A stretch of DNA of 64,000 bases from Callorhinchus milii (GCF_018977255.1 NW_024704755.1:15748001-15812000); one strand, 5' to 3'; positions 33,361-58,255 are shown, numbered from the stretch's first letter. Made by a program: numbers and translations. Notes: a model not told the origin generated them from the sequence alone.

Positions 33361-34512
33361 GAATCGCTATTGGATCAGAAGAGAGAATTATCTGAGAATT
33401 GTTGTTAAAGTATACAAGTCTCACAGAATGACAAAATTAAGAAATTGTGTTGAGGTGTTGGAGCTAACCTAGTTGTAGAGTACAGATTAAGTAAATTTGA
33501 AGAAGCAATTTTGTTAGAAATAGTTAAAAACAATATATATATATACAGCATGATATAAACTGATGATTTTCACAATTTATTCTAGAATGAAAATCCCAAA
33601 TTTGAGAACTGCCATCTAGCATATAACGCTTATACTTTTGAGCAAATTAATTAAATCAGAGCCAGAAAATTAAGCATCAATCTCAAATGTTATTGCATCC
33701 TTTCATCCAGTCGTTGATCAAACACTTAAGATTTGAAGTTATTTTCTGGTTTTGTATCTGATTTTAATTTGTCTGTCTATCCTATGTGTCTATTATCTGA
33801 AGACATGTCATAATCGTTTACACTTAAGATTTACTTTCCAAGATGCAAGGATTGTTATTATTATAAGATATATTTATAATTGACCTAATGAAATATGTTC
33901 AAATGAATAACAATTTGAACAATTGAAACAGAAATGTAATACAATTCAATAAACTTGTGATTGATGATAATTCGGGCCAACAATACTTGTGTTTGATGAT
34001 AATTCATGCCAACAATCAGGCCAAATGTGCAAATGGGCTGCCGAGACCGCCTAAAGGCATTTCTCTTTATAGTTTATTCGGAGAAGTGCTTTGCTATATC
34101 CTCTTGGCAGATTTTCCACAAGATTAAACATGTGCTTATAATTCAAAAATGGTGCCCTAGCTTTTCTACTTAAACCATCTAATCACTCGGTGTAAGAGAC
34201 CCAATCATGTTTCAGAACATTCATTGTAATCTTTCTCTAAATCATTTATTTCACATATATTTTACTTTTCAGCATTGCTCCCCATAAGATATACAATTCC
34301 AGTACCCTTTAATCAGACAAATGTCAAATATCAATCAAATGTCACTCAACACAAGAAACCAAACTCCTGAGTCCACAGACTGGATGTCAAACGTCACTGC
34401 CGCATATCTCATCTCAAGGAACTTCAACTCTATGTTACAAACTAGTGACAGCTTCAGGGCTCATCTGGCGTGACCCAATACCTCAAACACCAGACTTTCA
34501 CCAGAGATCAGA

Positions 34513-34567
34513 ATGTTGGCGAGTCTCATGTTACATCACCTGTCTCTGATAGGAATATTCTCTAAAG
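34513..34567 (+). CDS. G4 exon 1, leader (MLASLMLHHLSLIGIFSK)
   Basis: ATG..g|gtttgt, phase 1, 55 nt. Confidence 0.82.
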
Positions 34568-35075
34568 GTTTGTGCTTATTCTATTTTCCCGTTTTCTGAA
34601 AAAGTATTTATTTAACTTATATTCATCATATAAAGTCTGTTTGTCAGCCTAGTTCAGTTGGTAACACTCTTAAGGCTTTAAACCTGTACAGTCTGGGATT
34701 GCACTGCAAGGTAATGTTTGGATCCTATTGCATTGTTGGAGGTGCAGGCTTTCAAATTAGACTTCAAATCGAGAATCCGTGTGGCATGGAAATGTTGGAA
34801 AAATATGTCCGATGTCCTGACCATCATCTCTCCGGGTAAAACTGATCATTCACTTTACAGCTGTTTGCGGAGCAAATTGTCTGGTTGCCTCATTCCCCAA
34901 CGAAATACACACTGATTACATTTTAGAGTATATGCTGTGAAGGGTTTTGAGGGGACTTTCCAATGTTAAATATACTACATCAAATGTAAGGAATTTTAAT
35001 TATGTCTCTATCTTGCTCTATATATCTGTCTTCACCATGTTATTTATAATCGATGTTTGAATTTCTTTCTGATAG

Positions 35076-35170
35076 TTGTTGGTGGTGCTTTGATTAAAGT
35101 GACCCAATACCTCGAACAACAGTCTTTCATCAGAGATGCAGAAGTCAAGTTCTGTTGCACCTCTCACTGA
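35076..35170 (+). pseudogene. Truncated V-exon copy in G4 intron 1
   Basis: ctgatag acceptor, then VVGGALIKVTQYLEQQSFIRDAEVKFCCTSH*. Confidence 0.75.
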
Positions 35171-35199
35171 TCCCAATTTACGTGTTTGTTGATCGTACT

Positions 35200-35535
35200 A
35201 TTGCCCCTGAATCCAATGGTTGTGGGTTCAAGACGCACCTAAGGACTTGGAACTCATATTGTCGAGGCTGACCATTCCATTAAAGATCTGTGATAACAGA
35301 GGTTCCGTCTGCCTGTTCAGGAGGATGTTTAAACATCCCTTGGAGCTTTTCGAAAAGAGAAAGGGGTTTCTCGCAGTTTGCCAACAATCCCCCAAATAAG
35401 GTTGGCCATTTATATCATGGCTGCTTATAGGACACTGTTACACACAAATTTGCTGTCTCATTTGCCAACTATATATGCAGTTACAACCCATGTCATGAAG
35501 CACTTTGAGAGGTGTTTGCAATATTAAGGGCACTG
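35200..35535 (+). mobile_element. LF-SINE/Deu-like SINE (counterpart at ~52700-53080; a related copy at ~34640-34990)
   Basis: ggttgtgggttcaag..ggacttg..aggctgac..ccgtctgcctgttcagg. Confidence 0.55.
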
Positions 35536-35629
35536 TATCAAATGTAACAATTATTAACTGTGTCTATCTTGCTCTGTGTGTATATCTCTTTAATATATTG
35601 TGTTAAATGTTTTAATTTATTTCTGGCAG

Positions 35630-35950
35630 TAGCTGGTAGAGCTTTGATCGAAGTGACCCAATACCCCGAACACCAGGCTGTAAGCAGAGGTACAGATGTC
35701 AAGTTGTACTGTGCCTTCCCTCTCCCTGACCCCAACTCATATGCTAAAGTGCACTGGTGGAAGCAAGGCGAGAGTCAATACCTGCACAGGAGGCCCGATA
35801 AGAGGAAAATATTCGGTTTTGACAGTAAAGCATGTGGTCTATTTCAACTCCTTGATGCCACTCTCCAGGACTCTGGAGTCTATCACTGCACACTGAGTAT
35901 TCAGGGGGAAATGGCAGGAAATGGAACTGGATCACAGCTAACTGTATGTG
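35630..35950 (+). CDS. G4 exon 2, VJ-type V domain
   Basis: LYC, HWW, DSGVYHC, GNGTGSQLTVC; 321 nt, phase 1-1. Confidence 0.93.
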
Positions 35951-36357
35951 GTAAGTGAGAATACAAGTTGTTTCAAGCGTAAAAATCTCAAAACTCTTCA
36001 GTGCCTTTATTATGATGTACAGTGAATATTTTTACAGATGCAAACGAGGTAGTCATATGCACAGAACCAGGTAAATAATAGATATGTATTTTGGAGGCCA
36101 GTTGGCCAGTTGGACACCAGTAAAAACTTCCTTCTGTTTCCAGTAATGCCCCGTTACATTTACTATATTTGGTGTCAACTAAAAAGGCAATCATAGTCTT
36201 GGTTAACATTTCATCCGCAAACAACACCTTCGACAATATAGTATAAAAATATAAAATACAGATAAGACACAATTATAGTGGCATCAAAAACAGAGTACAG
36301 TTTAATCCCATAACTGAATCCATGTAACCAGACTCTTCTCCGTTATTTGTTCTACAG

Positions 36358-36675
36358 TTCCTCCAGATCCGCTGAAGATAGACCGCACAGCTCCTCAGAA
36401 AAATTCATCCGCAACTCTGACCCTTGTGTGCAAAACAGCTGCATTTTATCCGGAGAATCTGACCCTCACTTGGTATAAAAATGGCACTGAAATTACAACT
36501 GGGATAATTACCACAAAGCAACAGAATACGGATGGGCTTTATGAAGTTTCCAGCTCTTTGGAGGAGACGCAGCCTGTCCAGAGTGGACTTGTTTATACCT
36601 GTCGAGTGTCCCATCTTATTAAGCAGACTGCAGAAATTGCTTATATTGTTCCTCCTCCAGAAGCAGAAAGTAAAG
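36358..36675 (+). CDS. G4 exon 3, C1 domain with GC donor
   Basis: LVCKTAAFYPENLTLTWYKNG..YTCRVSH; ends aaag|gcaagt, 318 nt, phase 1. Confidence 0.88.
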
Positions 36676-37887
36676 GCAAGTGGATTAGAGTTAACTATTC
36701 TTACTGGAATGTTTCCTTCTTTTATTCTGCATCTTAAAATATAGCCATACAATTTACTTCATGTAAAATACCTATAATAACAATTAATAATCCTACATTC
36801 GATATAAAGACTTTCACGTCCGGAGAACGTCTCAACACACTTTACGGGTTATGTTGTATTTTGTAGACCAATGCGGCAGGTAATTTGCACACAACAATGT
36901 TCCTTAAATTGCCATGAAGTTAACATTTGAGTTAATTTGGGGGATTGTTAACCAGAGCAGCTATTCTTTTCAAATCATGGCATGGCAAGTGAATTAGTTA
37001 ACTATTTTTACAGGAATATATCCTTCTATTAAGCCGCACCATATATAATAGGCATAATGTTTGATTCATTTAAACTCCCTTCAATAATAAATAATAGCTT
37101 TCAAGTTGGGATTAACTATTCTTACTAGAATGTTTCCTTCTTTTATTCTGCACTTTAAATTCTAGCCATACAATTTGCTTCACCTAAAATGACTATAATA
37201 ACAACTGATAATCATATAAAGACTTTCACCTCCGGAGCAGTTCTCAAAACGATTTACAGGTTATACTGTAAAGTGTAATGACTGCATTTTGTAGGCGAAG
37301 GCAGCAGCCAACTTGCACACAGCAATGTTCCATCAATGACCATGAAGTGAACCACCAATTTGGGGACCAGAGTACCAGAGCAGCTTTTCTTTTCCAACAG
37401 TGCCACAGGCTCTTTAACATCCACCTCAACAGGAAGACATGATCTGGGTTCATAATCTCATCTGAAGGATGGCACCCAAATATTTGACGCAGGCTCAACA
37501 TTCAATGGAGAATATTTGAACTCTAGAGATTGCAAATTAATGACACTTGCCCCTGAAAATATTAAAATCTCAGCTTTCAAACATTTAATGTATAACGCAT
37601 GATGAATGTGAGAATGGATTCTATTTTTGTATCCCATTCCCATTTTTGTTATACGCTAATACTATGTCCACGATATATAATTATTTCCTCCCATAATGTT
37701 GATTTCTTATTTCTTGTAAAGTTTTGCACAGAAGGCTAAAGTCGACTACGCGCCCATGCTTCTCTGTATTTGACCATCATATTTTCTTGCCGGTGCTTAA
37801 ACCACCTAATTACTATATTAATTAATATTAATCACTTAATGACATTGAGCAGAGAACACTGCTTCATGTGGTTGCTTTATTTTGCAG

Positions 37888-37991
37888 CTTCTTACGATGT
37901 AATGGCAATTTCTCGGCTTGCCTTTGGCGTATTCATAATACTACTGTTGGCCGTCGTCATTGTGGACCATTTCAGATTTTTTCATCTTTAA
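37888..37991 (+). CDS. G4 exon 4, Arg-containing TM and short tail (ASYDVMAISRLAFGVFIILLLAVVIVDHFRFFHL*)
   Basis: tttgcag acceptor, phase 1; homologous to the G2 TM exon. Confidence 0.88.
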
Positions 37992-40399
37992 ACGTGAGAC
38001 AGTTATTAACTTTAGTGACTGCAAATGCTTTGATTTTAAAATATTTGCTGAATAACAGCAGGAGCTCAAGTGAGAAATATATGTTCATAGTCATTAAGAT
38101 ATTCTGAGACTTTGTGAAAGGTATTGAAGTTGTGATGTTGAAGCATTTCCAATTGTGTGGTACAGTTCTGCAAATTTGAAAAATGAATTTCTTCATATGG
38201 AGTTCAGTTGAAATTAATGTAACTATCAGCATCATAAAAACAATTTTAAATTTGAACTTCCTCAAGTATCTGTACAGCGGATGATTGGAATAAATGAGCA
38301 AATTAAGTCAAAGATGCAACATTAAGAGTTACATTGAAATGTTAACTGACAATATTCTTTCGGGTTCTGATCTTTTATGCAATGTAATTTCTGTTTTCAT
38401 TTCTGATTTGTGTTTTCGGCATTGATCACTTAACATCATGTTCTCATTTTACAAAGCAGCTTTATCATTTCAGATCTTGATGGAATCAGTGAACTGAAAT
38501 CTGTTAGTGAGAAAACAATAAAACAATAATTGTTGTGGATGCTCAAAATATATTTAAAAAAAGACTATTTTTTATTTAGCGTGATAAAAATTCAATTAAT
38601 TAGCAACGTTCTTGACGCATGAAGAAATATATAAGATCCTGCCATTTAAAACAGACCTGACATAAAACAGTAATTTGTGTCAAATGTAGGAATTAATGAA
38701 ATCAATTATGGGAATAATTATTTAGTAATAATCAGAAATGTTTTCCTTTCTCATAGGCAGAAGCAGTGAGAAATTACTGACTACAAGAAATCAGAATCAA
38801 TGGAGAATGCACATTGCATGTTCCAGTACAGCAGGGGAATAGATAGAATGCGTTGTATACATGGAGAGAAAATCACTACTGTGAAATTCACCAGTGCATT
38901 ACCAAATTACCAAATGATGCAAAATAGTTATTATTGACATCAGCGGTGTTATACAGTATTATAACTACAGATGTGGTTTTATAAAATGTCAAGGTTTCCA
39001 TTTTTAATACATTAAACAGTCTCAAGATCTCAAACAATTTCCAGTTGTCATAACAATTATTTTGAAAAGAAGAACTTAATATTGTAAATTCCCCTAACAC
39101 CTTTTTTCTGACACAGTTACATATAATTACATAGAATAATGAAGTATAAAACAGGGCATTGAACCCAACTTGTTGGTACCGGTGTTTATGCTCTATATGC
39201 GCTTCAATCTCTTCTCAAAACACCTTTATTCCATTCTCCCTTATGTATGCTTACTGAAAGTACAAATCACCAACTGTAAATTAAAGTAAGAACTCTTGTA
39301 TTTTTGTTCAGATGTACTGCAAACGTTTACATTGGATACATTTCAATGAGTATATGAAACATTCCTGGGTGACACAAGGGGAAATAAGTTTGACTAGCAA
39401 AGTTCCGTAAAGATGCACCAATTATTATTCAATATTGCGATATTCAAAAATGCAACCCGCCTGAATAGTGATAGAAATGTGAATATAGAATTCTCTGAAT
39501 TGATGTCAAACATGCTACGATCATATTAGCACACTACGTTTTAGCACAATTATCAGTGGAGAAAATGAAGATTTCAACTATTCTGATAAAATGTGACCTT
39601 GAAGATGATTTTTTTTAAAAAATGGAAAAACCAAAGTGAAGGACCAATGTTCACAAAGCAGAAAACTTGGTTGAAAAAGAATCAGAAAGAGAATAACATA
39701 CTGATTGAGAAGTAACAGTGATATGACATTTAACATTGTTTTTTATAGTTGTACATGTAATAACAATAATAATCCTTGCATTTGATATAGCTCCTTATCA
39801 CGTTATTGAGAGGTCTCAAAGTGCTTCAGATAATATACTGTAAAGTGAAATGACTGTGTATTTCGTGAGTGAAATGCGATAGCCAGTTGTGCACAGCAAT
39901 GTCCCACAAATGTGCAAATCGGAAACGTGATTTAATGATGAAGAGCAGATTGCCAGTGTGTTAACACTTCTGGAAGACTGTTACATAGAAAAATCAGTCC
40001 CCAGAAGCTTCTGTACAACAACTTTGTGTTCCCTAACCCAAACACGTCTTAGAAATAAAATTTAGCAAATATTTTGTTTAGTCCATTTATTTCAGGTGTT
40101 CCCAAATATTGCACTTCCATGAAAGGTAGGTAACAACTTTCAAAACAGCTGGTCGCACATTTCTGAAGGGTGATTGTTTGAATGTAAAAAAAATTTTTAA
40201 AAATAATTATTCGAGAATGTTCTGAATGCATTTTGTATACAATTAATCAAATGCCTCGTTATGCCTTTCACATTATATTCATCCTAATATGTAGCTTTAG
40301 TGCACTGTCACATCAGACACAAATCAAGTGGGTTTCCTCGAAAATACATTTGGAAGAATAAGGTATAAATTTGAAATTTGGATTCTGTAATTTATAAGT

Positions 40400-40490
40400 G
40401 ATCGAGGTTTGCCAACTGTTTCGGTATTTATATCACACTGGATTTGAAAAAATTTCTAAGAGGAGAAGACAGTAGAAATCAGTAAAGTTG
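40400..40490 (+). pseudogene. Relic of ITIM exon A downstream of G4
   Basis: ttatatcacactggatttgaaaa..aagaggag and downstream flank match G6 56990-57150, with a deletion. Confidence 0.7.
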
Positions 40491-41059
40491 AAACACACAA
40501 CATTGAGATATAAATGATTTTATTTGCTATCAATTCTTACCATATTAATAGAGTTAATATTGAATTAATAACTATGAGCTTCTTTGTAGATTGCTGCTAT
40601 TAATAATAATCTTAATCATACTAAAAATAACAATCCTTGATATGATACATTTCGGTAAAATTCTCAGATGTTTCTTTGAATATACTGCAAAGTGAAGTGA
40701 TTGTGTATTTCATGGGCAAACATGGCAACCCATTTTATTTGGGAGTGGTTGGTTAGGACACCTTTTCGAAGAGTGAAATGGGATCTTTAATGAACACACA
40801 ACTGGGCCTCGGTTTAATGCTTCATCTACAGGATGAGACTTTCATCAAAACAACACTGCAATGGAGAGTTAGCATAGAATATATGGGTTCCAAGTCCTGG
40901 AACTTGTAACTCATATATTCTCTGCTAATCGTCTGATGCAGAATCGAGAGTGCTACCAACTCAGCCAGGCTGACACTCAAGGCCAGATTAAGGGTTAAAT
41001 CAGACCACTTTTGGGGGCCCTTTGAACTACACATGCAAAACATGTAACAATACCTTTTT

Positions 41060-41550
41060 AAGATACGTTCTTGGGTGACTTCATTCTTGCAAAGATGTCA
41101 GCTACATGATCAAAACTTCATGTGCTCAATGGACACTAGTGCGAGTCCATTCACGCTATCCTGGATCACTGTTGATTCGGGTGAGTTTTTGATGAGACTC
41201 ATCTTTGAGAACGAGCGTTCACCTTCACAGATGGTTACTGGTAATGTTAAGAACATACGAAAACAACTGCCCTATTTGGAAATGTTGATTCCACCAAGTG
41301 ATTCTATTTAATATACTTTAGCATTTCTCGTGGAGTTTTCTCACGCTTTTTATATGCAACCCAGAAAGTGCACAATCTGATCAACACCATCGACATCAAA
41401 AAAAACAGCACTACTATGATAAGCTCTATTGCTGCAGGACATGACATCTGCTCCCCACAGGCTGCCTATTACATCAACAGACCTCCTGGAGATACGACTC
41501 ATATCTCTAGCTCTGCCCCTTTTGCCATCACTCACGTGCACCAGCCTTAA
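41060..41550 (+). mobile_element. Possible Helitron-like Rep-domain remnant
   Basis: CQLHDQNFMC and MISSIAAGHDICSPQAAYYIN loosely recall Helitron/Helentron Rep motifs (from memory only). Confidence 0.3.
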
Positions 41551-42087
41551 CCGGTGAGTGATGGCAAGAGGGGCGGAGCTGGAGTCATAAGTCCAACTCT
41601 GCCCCTCTTCTCGCTTCTAAGCGCTGCCTCGTGCGTCGAGCAACCTTGAGGGGTAGAGCTGGAGGTACCACTCTCCGCCCAGCGACAGGGACAGTGGTGC
41701 AGCAGGGTGGTAAAGGTATCAATCATAGCCGGGGCCCCTCAGACCTCGGGTCGGTAAGGCATGGTTTACCTATTTATTGGTTAATCCGGCCTTTTTAATA
41801 CATCTAATCTTTTGTCTTCATCAATATCCTATCCTCCCTTCAGACCTGAACACAAGCACAATTAAACAGACCCCTCCACCACTTAGTTAAAGATTTATCT
41901 CCACGTGTGAGCCTTGAGTGCCACAAATTATATAACTCTTAAGGACATAAGTTCACGTAACAGCTGGGCAGCCTCCCAGCCACACACCAGCCATTAGGCC
42001 TAGAACCTCTGGGTTGCCTATAACGCATTTTGCACTGAGCAGGCCTTTACCAACAGAAGCGAAGTTTGAGATTCCTTGGTATTACAG

Positions 42088-42265
42088 ACAAAACAATGGG
42101 AAACCTGTAACTCTGTAGGAACTCTGTTTTGAACTTCTCAGACTCTCAAGAAAACTGAAAACCACAAGAGATACAAAAGCAGAATATGACGAGATACAGT
42201 TGAGGAAATATAAGAGGAGAAAAATAGGATCTACAATGAAGCATGAGCCACAAAATACCCGATAG
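42088..42265 (+). pseudogene. Relic of ITIM/ITSM exon B downstream of G4
   Basis: ttacag|TKQ.. then LNFSDS, KKTENHKR and DTKAEYDEIQLRKYKRR across frameshifts; matches G1/G6 exon B. Confidence 0.75.
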
Positions 42266-42637
42266 ATGGCTCACAAGCTATTTTTATATTGTTTTCATTG
42301 CCTGTCAGAGTCTGGGTATACTCATGTGCAACTGTAGTTTATTGAATCATAAAATAGCACAGCACAAGGCAGACTTGTCGGTGAATCATATCTGTCATGG
42401 TGCTTTTCTCCACATGAACCAATAATCTCATGTCCTGTTCACTCCCCTGAACATTCCGCTTCAAAATCTAAGAATCTATCGTTTTTTTGTTTGCATAGAA
42501 TGCCACATTCTCGGCAACTACGTAAAGAAATTTACACGTAACTGCGTAAACTTCCTATCCGTTCGTTTGACACTTATTTAAAATTGGTGTCCCCCCATCA
42601 CTGACTGAATCAAGAAGTGCAATAAGTATTCATTGTG

Positions 42638-42968
42638 GAGTTCTGTAGCTCAGTGGTTAGAGCACTCACCTTGCAAGCGAGACAGCTGAGTTCAGTTGCA
42701 GGCAGGGCGAAACCTTGGGCAAGTTTCCTTACTCCACACGCCTAATAATAATCCCTCCAAAACAAAACAATAATAAATTGGTCATTTTCAATCCACGACT
42801 GTTTGTGGGACAGTGCTGTGCGCAATTGGCTGCCGCGATTCGCCCACAAGTATACAGTCAATTCACTTTGCAGTATATTCTGTGAAGCGTTTTGAGACAT
42901 CTAGAAGACATGAAAAGTGCTATATCAAATGCAAGGATTACTATTATTATTATTACTACTATTATTAT
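42638..42968 (+). mobile_element. tRNA-derived SINE
   Basis: Head, core, (ATT)n. Confidence 0.85.
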
Positions 42969-43763
42969 GTTTACTCCCTATTTTAGTTTTCATTCAATAA
43001 AATAAAAATTACAAAAAAAGCACTCTTCCCAGTTCAGCCCATGTCACAAGATATATGCTCTCTTCCTTGTCTCTGGTCAGCTCCTTCTCACGCTAAGCAC
43101 CGATAGCATCAACCTTCAGAGACATGTACTCTTGCAGAGCCAGTCCAAAATCTCATCTTGTTTGAACCTTGACTGTCGTTCAAACCTTGCTCTCATTCAC
43201 AGATGATCTCATTCACTCACGTTTCCCTTACCTCTGCAATAATTTATGCCTGTCTCCCTCTCCCCTGGATGCTTATCCATGCCTTTATTGCATCCAGGCT
43301 TCATTAAGTGCTTGCCGGACTGCCCAATCTTGCCTGCAGAGCTTGTAGTTTACTCAGAAATCTGCCTGTCCCTACCAGACTCCACGAGCCTATCACTCCC
43401 ATTCTTGCCTGTTTCCACTGTCTCCCCATCCCTCAGGGTCCACCCCTAAAGTCCTCATTCTCGCATTTAATTCCCTCTATCATCTCGCACTACCCTATCA
43501 CTGCAAACAAACATGAAAGGCGCTATGTACATGTTTTGATGAATTAACTGAGCTGTGCTGCTCACCGGGAAGCTTCCAAGGAGCTTCTAATACTTGCTAT
43601 CCAACTCATGAGGGTTCAAACCCGGGCTTATCAAGTGTCAAATAGTCAATTAGTGAATAAGAATAACCTCGATAAAGCGGGCTTATCTAAAGGTAAAGTG
43701 GCTTCAAGGTTATATGTTTATATGTTGAAAACATTCTGACGTGCTCTGTTCTGGTATGTAGTG

Positions 43764-44120
43764 GAGACCTGTAGCTCAGTGGTTAGAGCACTCGCCTCAC
43801 AAGCAAGAGACCTGGAGTTGATTCCTGGCAGGACAAAATGTTGGCTAAGTTTCCTTACTCCACACGCCTCTGGTTACCTCGCAATAAGTAGGAACTCGGT
43901 TGTTAGTCGATTGTCAGATCACTTTTCCGAGGGTAATAATTCCTTAAATAAACATAATAAATTGCTCACCAATAAACAACTGTTTGTGGGACACTGCTGT
44001 GTAAAATTGGCTGCCGTGTTTCACCCACAAAATATATAGTCAACTTTACAGTATATTCTGTGAAGCTCTGTGAGTCGTTTCAAAGACGTGGTAAGGCACT
44101 ATTTCAAATGCAAGATTATT
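43764..44120 (+). mobile_element. tRNA-derived SINE (longer subtype, like 1306-1683)
   Basis: Head, extra internal segment, core, tail. Confidence 0.8.
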
Positions 44121-46399
44121 CTGTAGCACTGTTGAGCTGCAGCACAGTTTTGAGGGAATGCAGCACTGTCCAATGTGCAATCCTTGAGCTGAAACCATGG
44201 TCTGTTCAATGTCTGTTCCAATGGATGACATGATACCATTCGACCAAAAAATATTTTCCAGGCCAATATCCTTCGATACCAATTGGTCATTAACTTCTTG
44301 AATGTATGTGGGATCTACAGTACAAAATATGGTGGTATTTCAAATTCATGATTTCTCGTCTGACCGTTTATATCGCATAGCATGCTTGGGCTTCCAGACT
44401 TAACAGGAGTTGAGTGGGAAGAATCCATGCCCCCAAAGATGAGGCTCCCAATGAGCAGACTTCTCTGTTTACACTTGACAACAATTACCTGTGAACCACT
44501 TCAACATGAAAGGCACTGTATCAATGTTTTACTACATTTAACTTCAATAACTCAAGACCCTCCTCTTCGTCTGTGCCTTCGGTCGCCCTCTTTACCTCTA
44601 TCCTCCTAACCCTCCACTCTCCATAATGCCAACCCCCAGCTGCGGTCCAATCCTTGACTGTCCAGCACCTGGGGACGTTCTCCCAAAGTGAAAGGCGCTA
44701 AACAAATGTAATGTATTGTTGTTGTTATAAATGGTTCGCTTACACTGACCTGATATGATTGACACATGACCACTTGTCAATCTGGGCTGGACAGCACTGA
44801 CTTAGAGCAGTTTTGAACTTGTGGCAAGTCAAATTACAGAGAGTTTCCACTATAGACATTTGTTTGTCTGACAGGTGTTCTTTACATTTCACAATTAAGT
44901 TGAAGTCCAAAATTAACCATGTGGTCATGCTATCACCTTAAATACCAATGAAACATCAAAATAAGTAGCGCTTCACACTCCAGTTGTTTTATTAAATGTT
45001 TTTCATTGAATAAGAACAGCACACAACCTGTTGCTTCTGACTTAGTTTGAGATTTTGTTTGCGACTCTGTGTCACTATATTTTTGTTCCGCGAGGACACG
45101 GTGAGTTGGAATAAAAAATTGTGAATGTTGACCCAGGGGTGCCCGCAGTGAGTTAGTGCTGGGAGGGAGGGGCCGAGCAGGATATCCTCAGTTTTTTCAA
45201 CATTGGGTTGGAAAAAAGTAAAGCTCATCCTGGAATTGATGTCTGACAGGAACTTTGTCAGACCAACAGGGGTTCTAGAGCTGAGGGTGTTATCAAGGCA
45301 CAGAATATCACGAACACATGCATTTGTATCACGGACGAGGTGTAGGTGAAGAATTCAAGATGAAAAAAGATGTTGGTGACTTCAGATAGCAAGGGAAGAG
45401 AAGCAGCAGCTGGTTGTAGAGCAGCTGTTTGTAAACGGGGGCCAAAGAACCAGTGGTCTTTTTCATGTGGGAGATGAGAGAGGCAGAGATGAGGAAGATA
45501 TTTCATACAGTTCCTTACCACAGCATTGAGATGTCTGAAAGCGCTTCACAGAATATACTGTAAAGTGGATTGACTGTATATTTTGTGATCAAGTTGGAGG
45601 TCAAAGATGTGCGTTGTTAAGGTTGTGGAGTCAGCAGAATTGGAAGAGGTGGGAAGAGGAAGTCCAAGCAGTAGAGATGATTTGGACACCGGGAAATCCA
45701 ATTAACTCATATGTGGTTTCGGAGTCGAGGATGTAGGGAGCATGGGAGATGAAGACGAGTTTGGGATTATCTTATCCTTCAAGATGTTCCTTGGTGTATA
45801 AGAAGTGATAACTTCGATGCATTTTATCCAGACTACGAACTAAAATATTAGTTATGCATCTATTTATTCAATGAACTGAATGTTGATCTTAAGTAAAGAG
45901 TTTGTTTTATCTTGGTGTTACGTATGAAAATTGATTATGAATGTTGGTCTTCATGTGGGAAAAGTCCCTGAAATAAATGGTTATCTTACACCGATCTGAT
46001 ATGATAGACTTTAAGTAAGATTGCCTACATGAGAACAGATCTCACAGAATTAACCCTGGTTGCTGATGACACATAAATGACTCTTGGAGACTGGAAACAG
46101 CTAAGCTTCGCCAGAACTTTCAAGAGAGAAAATAATCAATTCATCAAAGATATTGTCAGCTTTGACGGTTACTTTCAAGCTCATTTTACTGTATTTGCTA
46201 AGAAATAGAAGACACAAGATTCTGTTAGTGCTAGGTAAACAAATGTATTTGCAATACTCCCCCCTCCCCCCACAAAAGAAAGAGGTGAATCCAAACTCCT
46301 GAAATACAGAGACAGGAAGTCTAATGTCACCACCACATGTTTTTTAACTTGAGCTTTTGCTATGCCTTGTTACAGACAAGCATCAGATTGAGGTTCAAG

Positions 46400-46454
46400 A
46401 TGTTGGTGATTTTTCTGCTTCAGCAAGCGTCTCTGATAGGGATGATGTTCACAG
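46400..46454 (+). CDS. G5 exon 1, leader (MLVIFLLQQASLIGMMFT)
   Basis: ATG..g|gtgcgt, phase 1, 55 nt. Confidence 0.85.
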
Positions 46455-46619
46455 GTGCGTGTCTATAATATACCCGATGTTCTGGAAAAGGACATGGAGG
46501 AAGTCGTTTTTATGTAGTTTTATCCATTTACATAGAGAGGACTGGTCTATTTATCAAGATTTGCTCTGTGTAGCTTTTTTTGTCTCTTTCTAATCAGGGT
46601 TTATATTTATTTCTGTTAG

Positions 46620-46940
46620 CTGTTGACGGTACTGCGATCAGAGTGATCCAACTCCCTAAACATGTTGAGGCAACCAGAGGTACAAACATTACCTTCTACT
46701 GTATCTTTCCTATCGATCAACCCAATCCGCGTTTAAAAGTGTACTGGTGGAAGCACGGAAATGATGAATACCTGCAAACAAGGAGTGATAAAAGAAAAAT
46801 ATTTGGATTGGAAAATAAACAAAGAGGCTTCTTCCAACTTCTTAATGTGAGTTTCCATGACTCTGGTGTGTATTACTGTGCTCCTGTACTTCAAGGAAAA
46901 CTGGCAGGAAGCGGACCTGGATCATGTCTAGCTGTACTCG
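46620..46940 (+). CDS. G5 exon 2, VJ-type V domain
   Basis: FYC, YWW, DSGVYYC, GSGPGSCLAVL; 321 nt. Confidence 0.93.
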
Positions 46941-47069
46941 GTAAGTGCTGATGCACAAGTTTCAAATTTCTCAAATTTCAACATGAAACTAAGAATCTAA
47001 AAACGGCGGAGAATATTTTGCAATTATTTGAGAATATGAAGCCTTTACTTTGATGCTTTTTAACTATAT

Positions 47070-47379
47070 AGTCCTGTAGCTCAGTGGTTAGAGCATTCGC
47101 TTTGCAAGCGAGAGACCTGGGTCGATTCCCGGCAGGGTGAAACCTTGGGCAAGTTTCCTTACTTCCACACCCCTGATAATAATCTCTCAAAAAAAGACAA
47201 TAATAAATTTGTCTTTCAAAACAGGACTGTGTGTGGGACACTGCTGTGTGTAATTGGCTGCCGCATTTCACCCACAAATATACAGTCAATTCACTTTACA
47301 GTATATTCTGTGAAGCGCTTTGAGATGCCTAAAAGACGTGAAAAGCGCTACATCAAATGCAAGGATTATTATTATTATT
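47070..47379 (+). mobile_element. tRNA-derived SINE with intact-looking A and B boxes
   Basis: tagctcagtggtt / ggtcgattcc, core, (ATT)n. Confidence 0.88.
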
Positions 47380-48363
47380 GCATCAGTATTTAATTACCTG
47401 CATACCAATTATAATGTCACATGCAAAACACACATATATTTCAATTCAACTTATTTTATCAACTTAGCTCAATTAATTTGCGTTTGTTAAAAGGTTGAGC
47501 TGAAGGTCCATATGCAGTGTCTATTTCTTATTTACAGGATTATATTTTGGAGATTACATTTATAATGTGTTGTATTAAAATGTTATGCATAGTCACCAGC
47601 ATTGACATGCAGTTGACTGAGAGACTGTGTCTCTATTTTATTCTGTCAGGATCATTGAAATACAGGTTTGGCACATACTACAATAAAGATTCCAGAAATT
47701 TACAATTAAGGATCTACATGGTGATTGGTTTGAAAGGCAAATGTTATTACCTCATAGACAGGTTCAACATATCCCCCTCACTATTGTCTATTTAGTTCCC
47801 ATTAAATGTAATATCAACTTCAAAATATTTCTCCCGTTTACTAAGGTCTGATAGAATGAAGCTTATCTGCAGTAGCTATATTTATCTGTGAATGTCTCTG
47901 TAGCAATGGAATTGATTTTCTTTCCCGACTTTCAATCTGCAACTACAGGCCCAGCTGGTTTATTACTATTTCCATCGTTCTCAGTTATATGTACCTGAAT
48001 GATTCGATTATATATTCAGAAGCAATAAATATATATATTCAGAAGCAATAAAAATTAGCAGCCCTCTTCTAAATTATGGAAAAAAATATTTTACTGAGTG
48101 GTAATTCAAACATTGTACTTCAGAGAGGATTGATACGCACAAGCTCTTTGTGTTACCATTTGCCACTCCCTGATAATAACTCATTCACAATTGAAAACGT
48201 TGATAGATTCCGGTGCCAAAGTTATAAGTTAACCAAATAATAGTTTGGAAAATATAAATGAATAAACCAGAATTAAAAGTGTTGCAGAGAAATGAATTGG
48301 ATACCTATCAAATTATATGATGTGCAATATGATATACTAGAAAAAGTAGTAAACAGTAAGGAA

Positions 48364-48666
48364 CACTGGCGGGTGGATCGGTAACCCGAGGACACTGATT
48401 TAAAATAGTTGTTAAAAGAAACAGAGTGGAGATGAGGAGAAATGTTTTCACACAGCGAGTTGTTGAGATCTGGAATGTATTGCCTGAAAGGCCGGTGGAA
48501 GCCAATTCAATAACAACTTTTAAGAGAGAAGTGGATTAATATTTGGGGAAGACAAGTTTGTAGGGCTATGGGGAGAGAGTGGGGAGTGGGATTGAATTGA
48601 ATTTTCAAAGAGACACGATGAGCCAAATGCCTCCTCCTGTGCTGTATAATTCTATGATTCTATGAT
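48364..48666 (+). mobile_element. CR1 3' fragment
   Basis: FTQRVVEIWNVLPE..; ends attctatgattctatgat. Confidence 0.85.
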
Positions 48667-48752
48667 AAACAAACTATGTTCCTAAATTCCTAATGTTAGT
48701 GCCCCCAACTGAGCGGAAGTGACTTGATTCTGGTCCATTATCCATCCTACAG

Positions 48753-49064
48753 CTCTGCCCACTCCACTGAAGATTTTCTCCAGGGTTCCCGAAAGATTTT
48801 CATCTGCCTTTCTGGTACTTGTGTGTGAAACTGCCATGTTTTACCCAGAGAATCTCAATCTCTCATGGTACAAAAATGGCATTGAGATATCATCTGGAAT
48901 AACTATCACTAAGCAGCAGAATGCCGAAGGACTGTATGAAGCCTCCAGCTCTATAACAGAGACACAGACTGTCAGAACAGAGACAGTATATACTTGTCAA
49001 GTATCTCACCCCAGCCTCCAGAGTCCAGGAATTGCCAACTATACGGTTAACTTGTTTGATGCAG
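48753..49064 (+). CDS. G5 exon 3, C1 domain
   Basis: LVCETAMFYPENLNLSWYKNG..YTCQVSHPSL; 312 nt, phase 1-1. Confidence 0.92.
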
Positions 49065-50213
49065 GTAGGAAACCAACAATCTCATTGTCTGCTACATTTT
49101 CACAGGAATATTTCCATATATTCATCAAATTAGTTATATAATTTGTTTCATGAAAATTCACTATAAATCTGGAAAATAATCTGGAAAATAATTAAGTTTT
49201 AAAGACTTATCTACATGACTTCCTTTCCTGAAGCTATTCGCCAGTGGTCTTAGTCTCAAATAATTTTAACTACTCATAAAGAAACAATTCCTAATTTTAA
49301 TTAACATTGCAAATCAGTCATGCAAGTAATGCATAGTCAATCCGCTTGAAAATATATTCTATGAAACACTTTGAGACGTCGCAACAAAATGACAAGAAGC
49401 TGTATCAAATGAAAGTTTTTTTATATAATGTTAAACTTCCATGGAATTACATTCCAATTAACTCATTTAAATTATTTAATCTGCACTTGCGGTTTGCCTG
49501 ATCGTGAGAGTTGCTGAAAGGTGTCATAAAATACAGCTGCCAGACTCTCCGCAAAGTAACTTGTAAACTGTTTTCAGTCCACAGCAAAATTATTGGTTTA
49601 CTAAATGGACAGGTACATTTTTGACTTTATTTCATATAAAGTTGGTGCTGTTGGAGTTCTTGTGTCTAAAATATTTTTCTTTAACTGTCACATTTAGTTC
49701 AAAATCCAAAATGGTGCATGCCTTCATGCTGTTTTGCAGGAACACATCATAAATTATTCACCTCTCAGTCTAGGCATTCAGCTATGTTTTAGTTGAACGC
49801 CTTCACGATAAGCGCGAAGTACATAAGAACATAAGAAATGCTAGACAGAAAAAGACCAAGATCCATCTAGTTTGCCTTCCACTTTCCTGGCGGTCGCATG
49901 CACATATGTCCCGAACTACCTATGTACTATATCCCATAATGTTATTTCCTAAAGGAAAACTATCTAATCTGTATTTGTAACTTCCTTTACTTCTGAAATG
50001 GTCTTTGGAACTACCCTTTGCATTAAATCCTATGCAGCACTGTGAGACACTCTCCCAACGTGAAAGGCGCTATATCATATGTCAGGATTACAAGAACATA
50101 AGTCTCACTGTTCGAAACACTGATTGTCCACCACGGTGGGATGTCTTCCCGCTGTGAAAGACGCTATACAAATGTAATTTTGTGTTTGTTGTTGTTCTAT
50201 CGTTACTTTGTAG

Positions 50214-50325
50214 GTTTTGATGATAAACCTTATGCTATTGCAATATCCGATTTACATTGAGCATGTTACTAATCCTGATCTTGGCCATCATCATTGTGGA
50301 CCATTTCAGAAAAAACCCTCTTTAA
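50214..50325 (+). pseudogene. G5 exon 4, TM exon with a 1-nt deletion (as read: GFDDKPYAIAISDLH*)
   Basis: Adding one C at 50248 restores ..AISRFTLSMLLILILAIIIVDHFRKNPL*. Confidence 0.82.
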
Positions 50326-51784
50326 AGGTAACACATTCATTGCTTTAAGTAACCATTTGGTGTAATTTCAAAGTATTTGCAGTAGGTAGAATAACTGTCG
50401 GTTCAGAAATGAGAAGTATATGATCATCGTTGTTAAAATATTCTGTGACTTTATTTTAGAGTCAGCTAGAGTATGGATACCTTAGGTATTAATGTGGCTC
50501 AGCAAGTGCTGGCAAGCCACTGAGTCGGAAACAGAATCGAAGCCTCACGTCGGGACTTTGAAGTCTCAGATGATACAATGCAATTCTGGGTGGGGGTCAG
50601 GGGGTGTTTACATTATTGGAAATGTCATCATTCGAATGAGTTATGCGAGACTGAGGTATCCTCTGTCTGTTTAGATGGTGTTTGTCTGATGGTTATTCTT
50701 TGACGTTATTCTCCGTTTTTATTTTTGATTTATTTTTGCTTGTCTGTCCTGCCTGCCTATCATTTGAAGACAAGTCATAATCATTTACAAGTAACATTTA
50801 TCTTATCAGATCTTGCCAGAATTGAAATTCTAACATATTTTCAATGAAGTAGCAATATGACCAATGAAACAGAAATTGTTGCGGAAACTCAAAAGACATT
50901 TTCTTAATGTAATTGTGTTTGATAATAATTCAATTAATTTATAGCACAGCCCAGATAAATGATGTCCTTGTCTGACTTTATATGAAAGCAGTAATTTGTG
51001 AATCCAATATTAGGATTAATAGATTAGCAAGATTCATAACTACATTCTTTTATTATAGGGAAAGAGATGAAAAGTGCCTGACTGTAAGAAGACAGAAAAA
51101 CTGAGGGAAAGTATTGAAAACGAATCGAGAAAAAAGGCGGAACAAATAGTCTGAATGGCAGCAAGCCATCATTATTGCTACTCATCTTCTATTTACTTAA
51201 ACTGCATCTGATAATCCTGATATATGATATAACGCTTTTCATGTTGGGAGAATGTCTCACAGTGCTGCATAGGATGTAATGTGAAGGGTAGTTCAAGTGC
51301 ATCTTTTGGTGAACTCTGTCTTTTGAATGTTTTTCTAAGCTCTGTGCAATACTGCGTGTCAAAGAGAAACATGTTTGCAAATGTGTAACGATTGTTCAAA
51401 AAAATGTAAAGATTACTTATAAACATCCGTGGAGTGTGATATCTAATATTGCAGATGTTGTACGGTCCATCTCGTTTTTTATTAATTATCATGAATTATG
51501 ATAAAAAATGTATTAGCTAACTAGACGTTTCAATTTATTCAAAACTGAATGTTCTCTCTTCATTAAGGATGACATTTTTTTTACCAGTAATATGTGCTTT
51601 GCTAATACCAAATATTCCAGTCTTCCCTTTTCCTTTTCTAATGTACCACTCCTGTAGGTGAAAGGGAAAGTTGTTTGGCAGTACATGTGTTTTATTTGCT
51701 TAAAACACCATCATATGCTGCACCTGAAAAGGAGAGATTGTGGGAAAACTGAGAAAATCAATGCCCTGGGCCAATGGAGACACT

Positions 51785-52340
51785 TAATCCCAATCTACTC
51801 TATCAAAATCTCTCATAATTTTGAACATCTCTTTTGAATCTCCCCTTAACCTTCTCTGCTCTTAGGAGAACACTCCCAGTTTCTCTAGTCTCTCCACATA
51901 ACTAAGGTCCCCCATCCCTGGTACCGTTCTGGTAAATCTCCTTTGACACTCCCCAAGTACTTGATATCCTTCCTGAAGCATAATGCCTAGAATTAGACAC
52001 AATACTCCAGCTGAGACCTAACAACAACATTTAATGAAAGTATGTATGAGGGTTTCGGCGACCTGCGGTGTGAGACAGTGGCAGAGCCGAGTGATGTGGC
52101 AGAGGAGGGGGAAGGCGGAGTGGGTCATGGAACGGATGTGGGGTAGAAAGGATAGTTGATGGTCAAACAAAATGCGAAGGTTCTGGACTGGCTTAGCAAG
52201 GTGGATGGTGCTGTCAGCGCCTGAGGTGAGGAAGCGCTGACCGGAGCCAATCAGGAGAGCCTCGGTCTTGTTGACGTTCAACTGAAGAAAATTAGCTCTC
52301 ATCCAGGACTTGATGTCCAACAGACATTCTAACCAATGAT
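51785..52340 (-). mobile_element. CR1 3' fragment (~51785-52020) next to an L2 fragment (~52030-52340)
   Basis: Minus-strand CR1 ORF2 end; L2 [25 protein letters not shown]. Confidence 0.75.
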
Positions 52341-52560
52341 TTATAAAGGTTTTGTAGTACTTTCTCACTTTTGTACTCTATGACTCTATTTATAAAGCCA
52401 GACAAATGTCTTTGCAAATGTCATCCAACCCAACGAACCAATCTCATGAGCCGATGCACACAGGAAATCAAACGTCACTGCCACTTATCTCATCTTAAGC
52501 AACAGCAATTACTTTTTACAGATCAGCAACAGCTTCAGTTAGTCTCAGTGGAAAATCAGA

Positions 52561-52615
52561 ATGTTGGCGATTCTCGTGTTTCACCGTCTATGTCTAATAG
52601 GAATAATTTCTAAAG
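52561..52615 (+). CDS. G6 exon 1, leader (MLAILVFHRLCLIGIISK)
   Basis: ATG..g|gtttgt, phase 1, 55 nt. Confidence 0.85.
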
Positions 52616-53174
52616 GTTTGTGGTTGAACAACTCAATTTTCTGATAAATAACAAAGATAATGTATTTCTTCTAGTTATATCCATTTATATAAAATCCACT
52701 GTCAGCCTTGCTCAGTTGATGATACTCGCATACTCGAGCCTGAAAGATTATGGGTTCAAGCCCTACGTCAGGACTTAGAACTCATATAACCGAGGCTGAC
52801 ATTCCATTGCAATGCTTGGACCATAAGAAGTGCCGTGAAGAGATGTTAACAATGGAGTTTCCGTCTGCCTGTTCAGGTGGATATTTACAAATCCCTTGGC
52901 CTTTTCATAAAGAGAAGGGTGTTTCCCTCAAATAAGGTTGGTAATGCATATCATGGTTGTTTGTGGTAGATTGCTGTACGCAAATTTTCTGCCTCATATT
53001 TAAATATACAGTTAAACATTTTGCAGTATATTCCGCAAAGCACTTGGAGAGGTGTTTGCAATATTAAGGACGCTAAATCAAAGATGATTAATTCTGTCTC
53101 TATCTTGCTCTGTGTGTATATATCTCATCATTGTGTTTTTGTTTGTAATCAATGTTTTAATTTATTTCTGGCAG

Positions 53175-53495
53175 TAGCTGGTAGAGCTTTGATCGAAGTG
53201 ACCCAATACCCCGAGCACCAGGCTGTAAGCAGAGGTACAGATGTCAAGTTGTACTGTGCCTTCCCTTTCCCTGACCCCAACTCATATGCTAAAGTGCACT
53301 GGTGGAAGCAAGGCGAGAGTCAATACCTGCACAGGAGGCCCGATAAGAGGAAAATATTTGGTTTTGACAGTAAAGCATGTGGTCTATTTCAACTCCTTGA
53401 TGCCACTCTCCAGGACTCTGGAGTCTATCACTGCACACTGAGTATTCAGGGGGAAATGGCAGGAAATGGAACTGGATCACAGCTAACTGTATGTG
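53175..53495 (+). CDS. G6 exon 2, VJ-type V domain
   Basis: As G4 except one residue (F for L); 321 nt. Confidence 0.93.
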
Positions 53496-53901
53496 GTAAG
53501 TGAGAATACAAGTTGTTTCAAGTGTAAAAATCTCAAAACTCTTCAGTGCCTTTATTATGATGTACAGTGAATATTTTACAGATGCAAACGAGGTAGTCAT
53601 ATGCACAGAACCAGGTAAATAATAGATATGTATTTTGGAGGCCAGTTGGCCAGTTGGACACCAGTAAAAACTTCCTTCTGTTTCCAGTAATGCCCCGTTA
53701 CATTTACTATATTTGGTGTCAACTAAAAAGGCAATCATAGTCTTGGTTAACATTTCATCCGCAAACAACACCTTCGACAATATAGTATAAAAATATAAAA
53801 TACAGATAAGACACAATTATAGTGGCATCAAAAACAGAGTACAGTTTAATCCCATAACTGAACCCATGTAACCAGACGTTTCTCCGTTATTTGTTCTACA
53901 G

Positions 53902-54219
53902 TTCCTCCAGATCCGCTGAAGATAGACCGCACAGCTCCTCAGAAAAATTCATCCGCAACTCTGACCCTTGTGTGCAAAACAGCTGCATTTTATCCGGAGA
54001 ATCTGACCCTCACTTGGTATAAAAATGGCACTGAAATTACAACTGGGATAATTACCACAAAGCAACAGAATACGGATGGGCTTTATGAAGTTTCCAGCTC
54101 TTTGGAGGAGACGCAGCCTGTCCAGAGTGGACTTGTTTATACCTGTCGAGTGTCCCATCTTATTAAGCAGACTGCAGAAATTGCTTATATTGTTCCTCCT
54201 CCAGAAGCAGAAAGTAAAG
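53902..54219 (+). CDS. G6 exon 3, C1 domain with GC donor
   Basis: Protein identical to G4 C1; ends aaag|gcaagt. Confidence 0.88.
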
Positions 54220-55553
54220 GCAAGTGGATTAGAGTTAACTATTCTTACTGGAATGTTTCCTTCTTTTATTCTGCATCTTAAAATATAGCCATACAATTTA
54301 CTTCATGTAAAATACCTATAATAACAATTAATAATGCTACATTTGATATAAAGACTTTCACGTCCGGAGAACATCTCAATATTTACAGGTTATATTGTAT
54401 TTTGTAGGCCAACACAGCAAATAATTTGCCCACAACAATGTTCCATAAATAGCCATGAATCGAACGACCAAGTTAATTTGGGGGATTGTTAACCAGAGCA
54501 ACTTCTCTTTTCGAATCGTGCCATGGCAAGTGAATTAGTTAACTATTCTTAGTTAAAAACTATTTTTATAACCTTCTATTAATCCGCACCATAAATTATA
54601 GGCATAATGTTTGCTTCATTTAAACTCCCTATGATAATAAACAATAATCCTCATATTGGATAGAAGTGGCTTTCAAGATAGGAGGATGGCTCATAGCGCT
54701 TCGCATGATGTACTGTAAAGTGTAATGATTGTATTTTTTAAGTGAACACAGCGGACAACAATGTCCCACAAACAACAATAAATAAATTACAAATTATAGA
54801 TGGGGGATTGTTGGTCATGTAACAGGAGAATTCTCTTCTCTTTTAAAATAGTGTCACGGTATCTATCATCCACTTAGGAAATATGAGCTCGAATTAACAT
54901 CCATCCTAAGGACGGTATATATAAATATAAAATACTCATGTTTTAATGGAGAATACATTAACTGCAGGGAATGTAAAACAATATAATTTGCCTCTGGAAA
55001 TGTTAAAATCTCATCCTTGAAAGATTTAACTTGTAATGAATGTGAGTAGGAATTGTTTATTTCCATCCTATGCTATTTGTACGAGTTAATATTATGTATC
55101 ATGTATGTTTTCTCTCAATGGGCTAAATACAGTTATTTGTAAATTGCCCTCAAAGTATATCTGCTCGCAGGCTTATCACAATTATGCTTAGTTCAGAACT
55201 GAACTCAGTATTTCCCCTGAAGCCAGAGCTGAGTTCGGGAGTTGAGTCTATGGGTTACACACACAGGAGCTGTATTTCACATTACCATGACACAGTTTAT
55301 GGAATATTAACAATACAATTAACAACGTATCTGCCTGTCCCTGTCCTTTACACTTCGGTAACAATAAATTAATGACTTATTTTAAACAAGTAAACCGTAC
55401 TCTGCGGGTGAAGGAAGAGACAAATCACTGAAATGTCCCGGTTACCATAATAGAACAAACATGATCGTGAAATCTCCTGAACTGTTTCTTTTCTGGTGAT
55501 GTGTGTACTTATGGAGATTATGAATAATTCTCAACTCTCATCTTTTTTTGTAG

Positions 55554-55643
55554 GGAATCCCAATAATTATTTAAGGATTGCTGGTTGTGTTGTAGGTGGA
55601 CTTGCATTTTTAGTGCTTTTAATAATCATTGGGAAAATGAAAG
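55554..55643 (+). CDS. G6 exon 4, TM (GNPNNYLRIAGCVVGGLAFLVLLIIIGKMK)
   Basis: ttttgtag acceptor, g|gtaaga donor, phase 1-1; 19 uncharged residues after the Arg. Confidence 0.9.
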
Positions 55644-56246: not shown

Positions 56247-56290
56247 GGTTGCACAGGAAACATAATGTATTGGACCATCGTGGCGAGCAG
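56247..56290 (+). CDS. G6 exon 5, 44-nt micro-exon (GLHRKHNVLDHRGEQ)
   Basis: ttttag..cag|gtaatt, phase 1-0; homologous to G1 8960-9003. Confidence 0.85.
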
Positions 56291-56958: not shown

Positions 56959-57069
56959 GGGGTGCAGGGATCAGATGCTGAGACGGTGGCTTATGTCACA
57001 CTGGATTTGAAAAGATCCAAGAAACATTCAAGACCTAAACATCAAGAGGAGAGTACAGTGTATGCACAG
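56959..57069 (+). CDS. G6 motif exon A, ITIM (VAYVTL) + ITSM (TVYAQ-V/I)
   Basis: tttacag acceptor, 111 nt, phase 0-0; donor gtagag is weak, and read-through stops at 57103. Confidence 0.85.
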
Positions 57070-58138: not shown

Positions 58139-58255
58139 ATCAAGCAAGGGGTTGCTCCAAACAAGCTGACATATGCTGCTCTAGAATTTTCGGAATCCAA
58201 GAAAACAGGAAAATTCAAACGTATCGACAAGGATACCCAGTATGCTGAAATACAG
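58139..58255 (+). CDS. G6 motif exon B, ITIM (LTYAAL) + ITSM (TQYAEI)
   Basis: In-frame acceptors at 58091 or 58139; donor cag|gtgaga; read-through stops at 58301. Confidence 0.82.

Follow-up and report, generated by a model that had tools for sequence, protein, structure and literature searches.

Near-identical ectodomain exons in a predicted inhibitory and a predicted activating receptor gene of the chimaera Callorhinchus milii

A tandem cluster of V(J)-C1 genes and the tract shared by two of them

The window analyzed here, a stretch of 64,000 nt from the elephant shark Callorhinchus milii (39% G+C, no gaps, and a sole N at 27125), contains a tandem cluster of six V(J)-C1 immunoglobulin (Ig) superfamily receptor genes, G1 to G6, which were located by tblastn with V and C1 peptides. 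All six lie on the plus strand, as do the parts of G4 and G6 described below, and the window holds no neighboring genes from outside this receptor family. The strongest internal match of the window in a self-BLAST comparison (35220-37096 against 52748-54646) joins two intact members of the cluster that are 17.5 kb apart on the same strand: G4 (V start, 35632; C1 start, 36360), which has a transmembrane (TM) exon encoding an arginine, and G6 (V start, 53177; C1 start, 53904), which has a cytoplasmic tail with immunoreceptor tyrosine-based inhibitory motifs (ITIMs).

Within this match lies a homogenized tract of 1,186 bp in G4 (35606-36791) and 1,185 bp in G6 (53151-54335). The two copies align with 1,178 matches, 7 mismatches, and 1 gap, which corresponds to 99.3% identity with 7 substitutions and a single 1-nt indel. 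The tract comprises the last 24 nt of intron 1, the V exon (35630-35950 in G4 and 53175-53495 in G6), the whole of intron 2 (35951-36357 in G4), the C1-set exon (36358-36675 in G4 and 53902-54219 in G6), and 116 nt of intron 3. The V exons differ at 3 of 321 nt (35670 A/G, 35722 C/T, and 35814 C/T, with G4 given first); two of these differences are synonymous, and the third, the sole nonsynonymous difference in the tract, is CTC (Leu) in G4 and TTC (Phe) in G6. This residue is located in the BC loop, which in the AlphaFold model connects strands 23-28 and 38-44. The C1 exons are identical at 318 of 318 nt, and intron 2 is identical at 402 of 406 positions plus one indel (35978 C/T, the 1-nt indel at 36029, 36319 T/C, 36334 T/G, and 36335 C/T). 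There are no differences in the tract's 24 nt of intron 1 or its 116 nt of intron 3. An earlier reading of the DNA, made from the sequence alone and referred to here as the sequence-only reading, had reported three V-exon differences with one Leu/Phe change in the BC loop, an identical C1 domain, and a nearly identical intron 2; the alignment and the structural model agree with it on each of these, and its exon coordinates were approximately right.

Both edges of the tract are sharp. In a MAFFT global alignment, identity per 100 nt is 96 to 100% from 35606/53151 to 36791/54335 and falls just outside to approximately 60 to 80% on the left and 77 to 92% on the right (tract versus flanks, Fisher test, p = 4e-55). 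A two-change-point likelihood scan located the left edge at precisely 35606/53151 and confined the right edge to 36791-36828, with a likelihood ratio of 411 compared with a maximum of 25 in 300 column shuffles. These edges reproduce the fall in identity that the sequence-only reading had put at approximately 35606/53151 and 36790/54335, and the sliding-window alignment that it had proposed as a check gave a sharp two-sided drop rather than uniform identity over the whole genes. The left end is where homology collapses into indels, and the right end lies inside sequence that is still similar. Intron 3 of both G4 (36675-37405) and G6 (54219-54700) opens with two or three degenerate tandem units of ~310 bp that start from the C1 donor, and the right edge of the tract falls inside the first of them; these units are visible by BLAST only, and Tandem Repeats Finder returned nothing for them.

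Divergence by segment, expressed as the Jukes-Cantor distance (K) between G4 and G6, is 0.42 for the 5' region and leader, 0.32 for the 3' part of intron 1, 0.006 for the tract, 0.16 for the next 305 nt on its 3' side, and 0.45 for the following 500 nt. The left flank of G4 in the 3' part of intron 1 (35220-35605) aligns with G6 52748-53150 with 265 matches, 92 mismatches, and 75 gap columns (74% identity), and the leader exons (34513-34567 in G4 and 52561-52615 in G6) are 80% identical at the nucleotide level, so that the divergence seen earlier in the leaders and intron 1 is borne out. The right shoulder of G4 (36792-37096) is 86% identical to G6 54336-54646; it has diverged significantly less than the left flank has (p = 3e-4), and less than the sequence further 3', and it is possibly the trace of an older conversion.

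The two genes can be aligned from about 34315/52400 to about 37640/55070, and beyond the latter point homology ends. They have in common several derived features, namely, a short intron 2 (407 nt, versus 1.6 to 2 kb in G1, G2, and G5), a short interspersed element (SINE) in intron 1, and the loss of the ancestral C1 donor, and their 5' parts were therefore already sister sequences. Independent SINE insertions were considered as a source of the flank similarity and rejected, as intron 1 matches between G4 and G6 over 459 columns compared with only ~100 nt of match to SINE copies. The flanks on either side can be aligned, are old, and resemble one another more closely than they resemble any SINE copy; a preexisting paralogue was therefore overwritten and no new piece was inserted.

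Transmembrane and cytoplasmic exons of G4 and G6

G6 contains an intact open reading frame (ORF) of 7 exons and 367 amino acids, with canonical splice acceptors and donors. Its leader exon (MLAILVFHRLCLIGIISK) encodes the leader peptide MLAILVFHRLCL at 52561, and the V and C1 exons are followed by a TM exon (NPNNYLRIAGCVVGGLAFLVLLIIIGKMK, 55554-55643) of the type that carries ITIM tails in relatives. The tail is encoded by cytoplasmic exon 5 (56247-56290), cytoplasmic exon 6 (56959-57069), which includes VAYVTL and TVYAQ-I, and the last exon (58139-58303), which includes LTYAAL and TQYAEI before the stop codon. Of these four tyrosine motifs, VAYVTL and LTYAAL fit the ITIM consensus, and TVYAQI and TQYAEI resemble immunoreceptor tyrosine-based switch motifs (ITSMs). 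The TM and tail exons group with ITIM-type genes, and the tail exons are 53 to 67% identical to the tails of the annotated C. milii proteins P0007, P0011, and P0013; their conservation extends to annotated relatives in sharks.

G4 contains an intact ORF of four exons and 265 amino acids. The leader exon (MLASLMLHHLSLIGIFSK, phase 1, with a GT donor) encodes the peptide MLASLMLHHLSL at 34513, the V exon encodes a V-set domain with the J-like sequence GNGTGSQLTV, and the C1 exon ends at the donor AAG/GCAAGT (exon/intron), as in the RefSeq model P0031. An alternative GT donor 6 nt 5' of this GC donor keeps the frame and would give a protein of 263 amino acids. The TM/tail exon (37888-37991) encodes (A)SYDVMAISRLAFGVFIILLLAVVIVDHFRFFHL followed by a stop codon, with the TM segment AISRLAFGVFIILLLAVVIV and then the 8-residue tail DHFRFFHL, which is short and without motifs. 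Only 16 hydrophobic residues follow the TM arginine, and the membrane-spanning helix must therefore take in this residue, which lies in its outer part. The same type of TM exon, with the pattern I-(S/T/V)-R-(L/F)...IIVDH, is found in G2 (24093-24213), in G5 (where it is frameshifted), and in two sharks, as P0025 of Scyliorhinus canicula and P0029 of Heptranchias perlo; the arginine is retained together with the VDH motif in G2, P0025, and P0029, and on these comparisons the Arg-TM exon type is conserved across Chondrichthyes. It belongs to a different exon lineage from the TM exon of G6. The segments of the two genes are thus discordant: the ectodomain pairs G4 with G6, and the TM exon pairs G4 with G2, G5, P0025, and P0029 and pairs G6 with the ITIM-type genes.

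Intron 1 of G4 also carries a 520-bp insert that is peculiar to this gene (34699-35219). The insert includes a relic (34938-35165, plus strand) consisting of the end of an intron 1, its acceptor, and the first ~90 nt of a V exon, which is 72% identical to G4 and 69% identical to G6. A 45-nt piece of the relic V sequence is copied at 89% identity directly 5' of the G4 start codon (34470-34513). The relic and the 45-nt copy are small ectopic copying events within the locus.

Two public protein models, both poor, correspond to these genes. P0001 (XP_007902895, G6, 52561-54278) includes the G6 leader, a V domain with Phe, and C1 but extends into intron 3, with no TM or ITIM exons. P0031 (XP_007902897, 9294-37991) is a chimera in which read-through combines exons of G1, G2, and G4; it contains a V domain with Leu, C1, and the G4 TM segment, spliced at the GC donor. 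P0031 has two other residue differences from the window, one within the tract (Glu/Asp in PPPEAESK) and one in the TM segment (Ser/Pro), which makes another assembly or haplotype with the same two copies the probable source of both models.

Origin and predicted consequences of the shared tract

Recent interlocus (nonallelic) gene conversion between G4 and G6, in what is predicted to be an inhibitory/activating pair, is the best explanation for this pattern and is strongly supported, and we consider the account given here likely. Purifying selection was rejected as the source of the identity, because intron 2 and the intron ends included in the tract are as identical as the exons; it is this homogenization of noncoding intron 2 that favors conversion. 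The sequence-only reading had proposed recent gene conversion, and the proposal is upheld by an intron 2 homogenized like the exons, by flanks that are old and paralogous, and by TM exons of different lineages.

The simplest history has two steps, starting from 5' parts of G4 and G6 that are old paralogues (K of about 0.2 to 0.45) over the leader and onward through roughly the first 1 kb of intron 3. An old mosaic would have fused a G6-like ectodomain to an Arg-TM module. Later, a double-strand break in one of the genes would have been repaired with the other gene, 17.5 kb away, as the template, and the repair would have overwritten 1,186 bp from the end of intron 1 to the start of intron 3. 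The right shoulder fits an earlier, longer conversion, and its divergence hints at recurrent homogenization. In the wording of the sequence-only reading, conversion "keeps" the two receptors alike, which implies a process that is both recurrent and selected; a single recent tract accompanied by a 3' shoulder of lower divergence is suggestive of this stronger claim rather than proof.

The mature ectodomains of G4 and G6 are set apart by one residue, the Leu/Phe difference in the BC loop, and by a few residues of the stalk. The earlier description of the same ectodomain on opposite tails holds at the level of sequence, with two ITIMs and two ITSM-like motifs in G6 and a TM arginine with an 8-residue tail in G4, and these motifs support the prediction of opposite signaling. 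G6 would recruit SH2-domain phosphatases through its phosphorylated ITIM and ITSM-like motifs and dampen signaling, G4 would pair through its TM arginine with the acidic residue of an adaptor of the FcR-gamma or DAP12 kind bearing an immunoreceptor tyrosine-based activation motif (ITAM) and activate, and both would present a practically identical ligand-binding surface. The activating decoy against pathogen mimics that the sequence-only reading expected would be an instance of the counterbalance idea, the usual evolutionary reading of paired receptors. What the sequence shows is the tract with its edges and noncoding content, the exon structures, and the motifs; the repair mechanism, the signaling polarity, the shared ligand, and any selective reason are inferred.

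Several points weigh against this account. There is no close third copy with which to polarize the conversion, and polarization with the other paralogues or with the V relic was uninformative, as all are 50 to 62% identical at the amino acid level or 69 to 72% identical at the nucleotide level to both copies. The TM segment of G6 also contains an arginine, at the outer edge of the hydrophobic run and three residues outside the position of the arginine in the short-tailed shark relatives P0009 and P0010; with an arginine in both, TM charge alone fails to separate G4 from G6. The C1 donor common to the two genes is noncanonical (GC) or weak (GTAAAG), and the read-through in P0001 and the chimeric structure of P0031 leave the G6 tail exons as predicted exons. 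The only difference within V and C1 lies in a loop similar to complementarity-determining region 1 that is likely to contact the ligand, and a change between Leu and Phe there could alter binding. In addition, the conclusion is drawn from assembled sequence, and it involves just one recent tract, which may be selectively neutral.

The dependence on an assembly matters in that near-identical paralogous tracts are a recognized hazard, where reads of one copy may be used to build or correct the other and create false identity. This source of the tract is very improbable here. The copies are distinct, with 7 substitutions and 1 indel distributed over the V exon and intron 2, and at the edges identity rises from ~74 to 86% to 99% within a few bases, unlike what polishing of divergent sequence would leave; no gaps occur near the tracts, the only N of the window being that at 27125, and the public models, apparently from another assembly, keep Leu with the G4 TM segment and Phe with the G6 leader. 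Still less credible is the proposal that a single unequal crossover or exon shuffling recently made one of the genes de novo from two halves. G4 is indeed a mosaic, with a 5' part like that of G6 and a TM exon like those of G2 and G5, but the point where the mosaic was joined, which falls between 37640 and 37888, dates from long ago, as K is about 0.3 to 0.45 on either side. A single crossover would moreover leave high identity running to one end of the gene, whereas identity drops on both sides of the tract and the flanks are alignable old paralogues.

A larger share of the doubt falls on the reason for the conversion. The event could be real but incidental, arising neutrally from ectopic repair in a tandem cluster that is rich in repeats and in which one partner may be poorly expressed or decaying. 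The cluster provides other cases of ectopic copying and decay (the V relic and 45-nt fragment in G4, the G3 pseudogene, and the TM frameshift of G5), and dN/dS among the copies (0.14 to 0.56) gives no signal of positive selection at the coarse, gene-wide level. Such a neutral origin nevertheless seems rather unlikely given that both ORFs and all splice sites are intact, that the tract spans exactly the whole ectodomain-coding unit, that the lower divergence of the 3' shoulder points to an additional, earlier conversion, and that the Arg-TM exon is conserved across Chondrichthyes. Beyond recent conversion between G4 and G6 as such, we advance only tentatively, as somewhat less probable than its opposite, the broader proposal that the two genes are a working activating/inhibitory pair, repeatedly rehomogenized by gene conversion in a holocephalan, and that their nonrearranging V(J)-C1 family is akin to the UrIg/SIRP-type relatives of antigen receptors.

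The receptor family and its relation to known paired receptors

The V-C1 protein encoded by 35632-36677 is a 99% match to C. milii UniProt A0A4W3H454/XP_007902895 (LOC103185940), and its next relatives, at 40 to 60% identity, are exclusively from chimaera, sharks, and rays, where they bear automatic labels such as [quoted passage not shown], "SIRP beta-1-like", "tapasin-related-like", and "NCR3LG1-like". Pfam assigns a V-set/Ig domain and then a C1-set domain to the G4/G6-type protein, with the J-like GNGTGSQLTV closing the V domain. An AlphaFold model made from 25 family members (predicted local distance difference test score, 89) is a two-domain module of V plus C1 that superposes on antibody light chains; a fold search with this model matched antibody light chains only, which bears out the V-C1 fold and gives no family assignment. 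By sequence, the best match among solved structures is shark UrIg2 (9dmx, E = 3.6e-22), followed by Ig constant regions (1e-19 to 1e-16) and SIRP-alpha (1.6e-16). Orthology to SIRP was not obtained by sequence, since UrIg2 and Ig chains score as well as or above SIRP-alpha and SIRP-gamma, and the second C1-set domain typical of SIRP is not found in the family, each protein having a single C1-set domain. G1 to G6 are a nonrearranging V(J)-C1 receptor family. In the ectodomain tree, the C. milii copies form a species-specific group in which tail type is discordant with the tree, and dS between G4/G6 and the other copies is 0.6 to 1.4. Literature searches for this family in cartilaginous fish, or for SIRP in the elephant shark, found nothing relevant.

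Among the other members of the cluster, G2 (V start, 20198; C1 start, 22577) has an Arg-TM exon and is intact, and G3 (V start, 28687; C1 start, 31600) is a pseudogene with stops. G1 (V start, 4559; C1 start, 6503) has ITIM-type exons, one of which, a cytoplasmic exon at 9383-9517, contains an in-frame stop (...SNKTSRT followed by a stop codon and YPQE...); a downstream exon retains LTYANL and TEYAQI, and G1 may be decaying. G5 (V start, 46637; C1 start, 48758) has an Arg-TM exon (50214-50325) with a 1-nt deletion exactly in the conserved Arg codon (TCC CGG TTT in G2 and TCC -GA TTT in G5). The deletion leads to a stop before the TM segment, which makes G5 either a pseudogene or a soluble form.

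The window contains a second large duplicated block, in which 2-2687 and 16704-19909 are 87 to 92% identical; the region upstream of G2 is thereby repeated at the start of the window, and the block ends 40 nt before the G2 ATG. The motif TCAAACGTCACTGCC, which is found ~70 to 130 nt 5' of the ATG in G2, G4, and G6 and in a diverged form (TCAAACTCCACTACC) at 2641, may be a shared promoter element. A tRNA-headed SINE of ~300 bp is present in at least 8 copies (1322, 18164, 18982 on the minus strand, 42640, 43765, 47070, 59156, and others), and the "tRNA" matches returned by ARAGORN and Rfam were rejected as tRNA genes because they are the heads of these SINEs. The stretches 10000-14000 and 28000-30000 are strongly C-rich (GC skew of -0.23 to -0.32) with Pro/Ser-rich low-complexity ORFs, and they have repeats in common (12060-12292 with 28855-29078 at 81% and 28861-29344 with 29642-30140 at 73%); these stretches are probably a repeat element.

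Gene conversion of ligand-binding exons between inhibitory and activating partners has been described for Siglec-5/Siglec-14 (PMC4042635) and Siglec-11/Siglec-16 (PMC5701461). As in these pairs, G4 and G6 are linked genes, one with ITIMs and one with a TM arginine and short tail, that have near-identical N-terminal Ig domains, sharp edges of identity, and different TM and tail exons. Siglecs, however, are sialic-acid lectins of primates with V-set and then C2-set domains, for which the ligands and the DAP12 adaptor have been experimentally shown, whereas G4 and G6 belong to a V(J)-C1 family of a chimaera known from sequence alone. The domain and motif arrangement is also like that of SIRP-alpha and SIRP-beta, in which a V domain with a J-like motif precedes C1-set sequence; there, too, four cytoplasmic tyrosine motifs mark the inhibitory form, and a basic residue in the TM segment together with a short tail marks the activating one. 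Unlike SIRP, which has two C1 domains, the family has one, and its ectodomain is no closer to SIRP than to UrIg2 or Ig constant regions.

CEACAM families, among them those of Xenopus, undergo gene conversion and contain activating and inhibitory members whose ligand-binding domains co-evolve, a pattern that has been read as an answer to pathogens exploiting the inhibitory receptor (PMC2832619, PMC5112662). Pairs of the CEACAM1/CEACAM3 type resemble the present family in their species-specific expansions with activating and inhibitory members, but CEACAMs have an IgV-like N domain without C1 and the activating CEACAMs bear ITAM-like tails of their own. UrIg and UrIg2, candidate relatives of the antigen-receptor precursor, show gene conversion among C-domain exons (PMC12227049) and likewise combine a nonrearranging V(J) domain with C1-set sequence in cartilaginous fish; they differ in being antibody-like proteins with multiple C domains rather than TM receptors with ITIM or Arg-TM tails. 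Within the family itself, the S. canicula proteins P0024 and P0025 are ~92% identical over the leader, V, and C1 with unrelated TM segments, and on such comparisons swapping or homogenizing the ectodomain between tail modules may be a family-wide habit.

The pattern seen in G4 and G6 is familiar from paired receptors of mammals and introduces no new principle. What it offers is a clean, base-resolved and strongly supported case of interlocus gene conversion that couples a predicted inhibitory receptor and a predicted activating receptor in a chimaera. The genomic process that underlies such pairs in mammals (Siglec, CEACAM, and others) is thus also at work in the living jawed vertebrates that branched off earliest. 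If the broader proposal of a working, repeatedly rehomogenized pair is true, the concerted evolution of paired receptors and the host-pathogen logic attached to it would have been present already at the base of the jawed vertebrates, with the two tail modules conserved across Chondrichthyes, the ITIM type and the Arg-TM type, used in such pairing. G4 and G6 provide a concrete pair for studies of ligands and adaptors.

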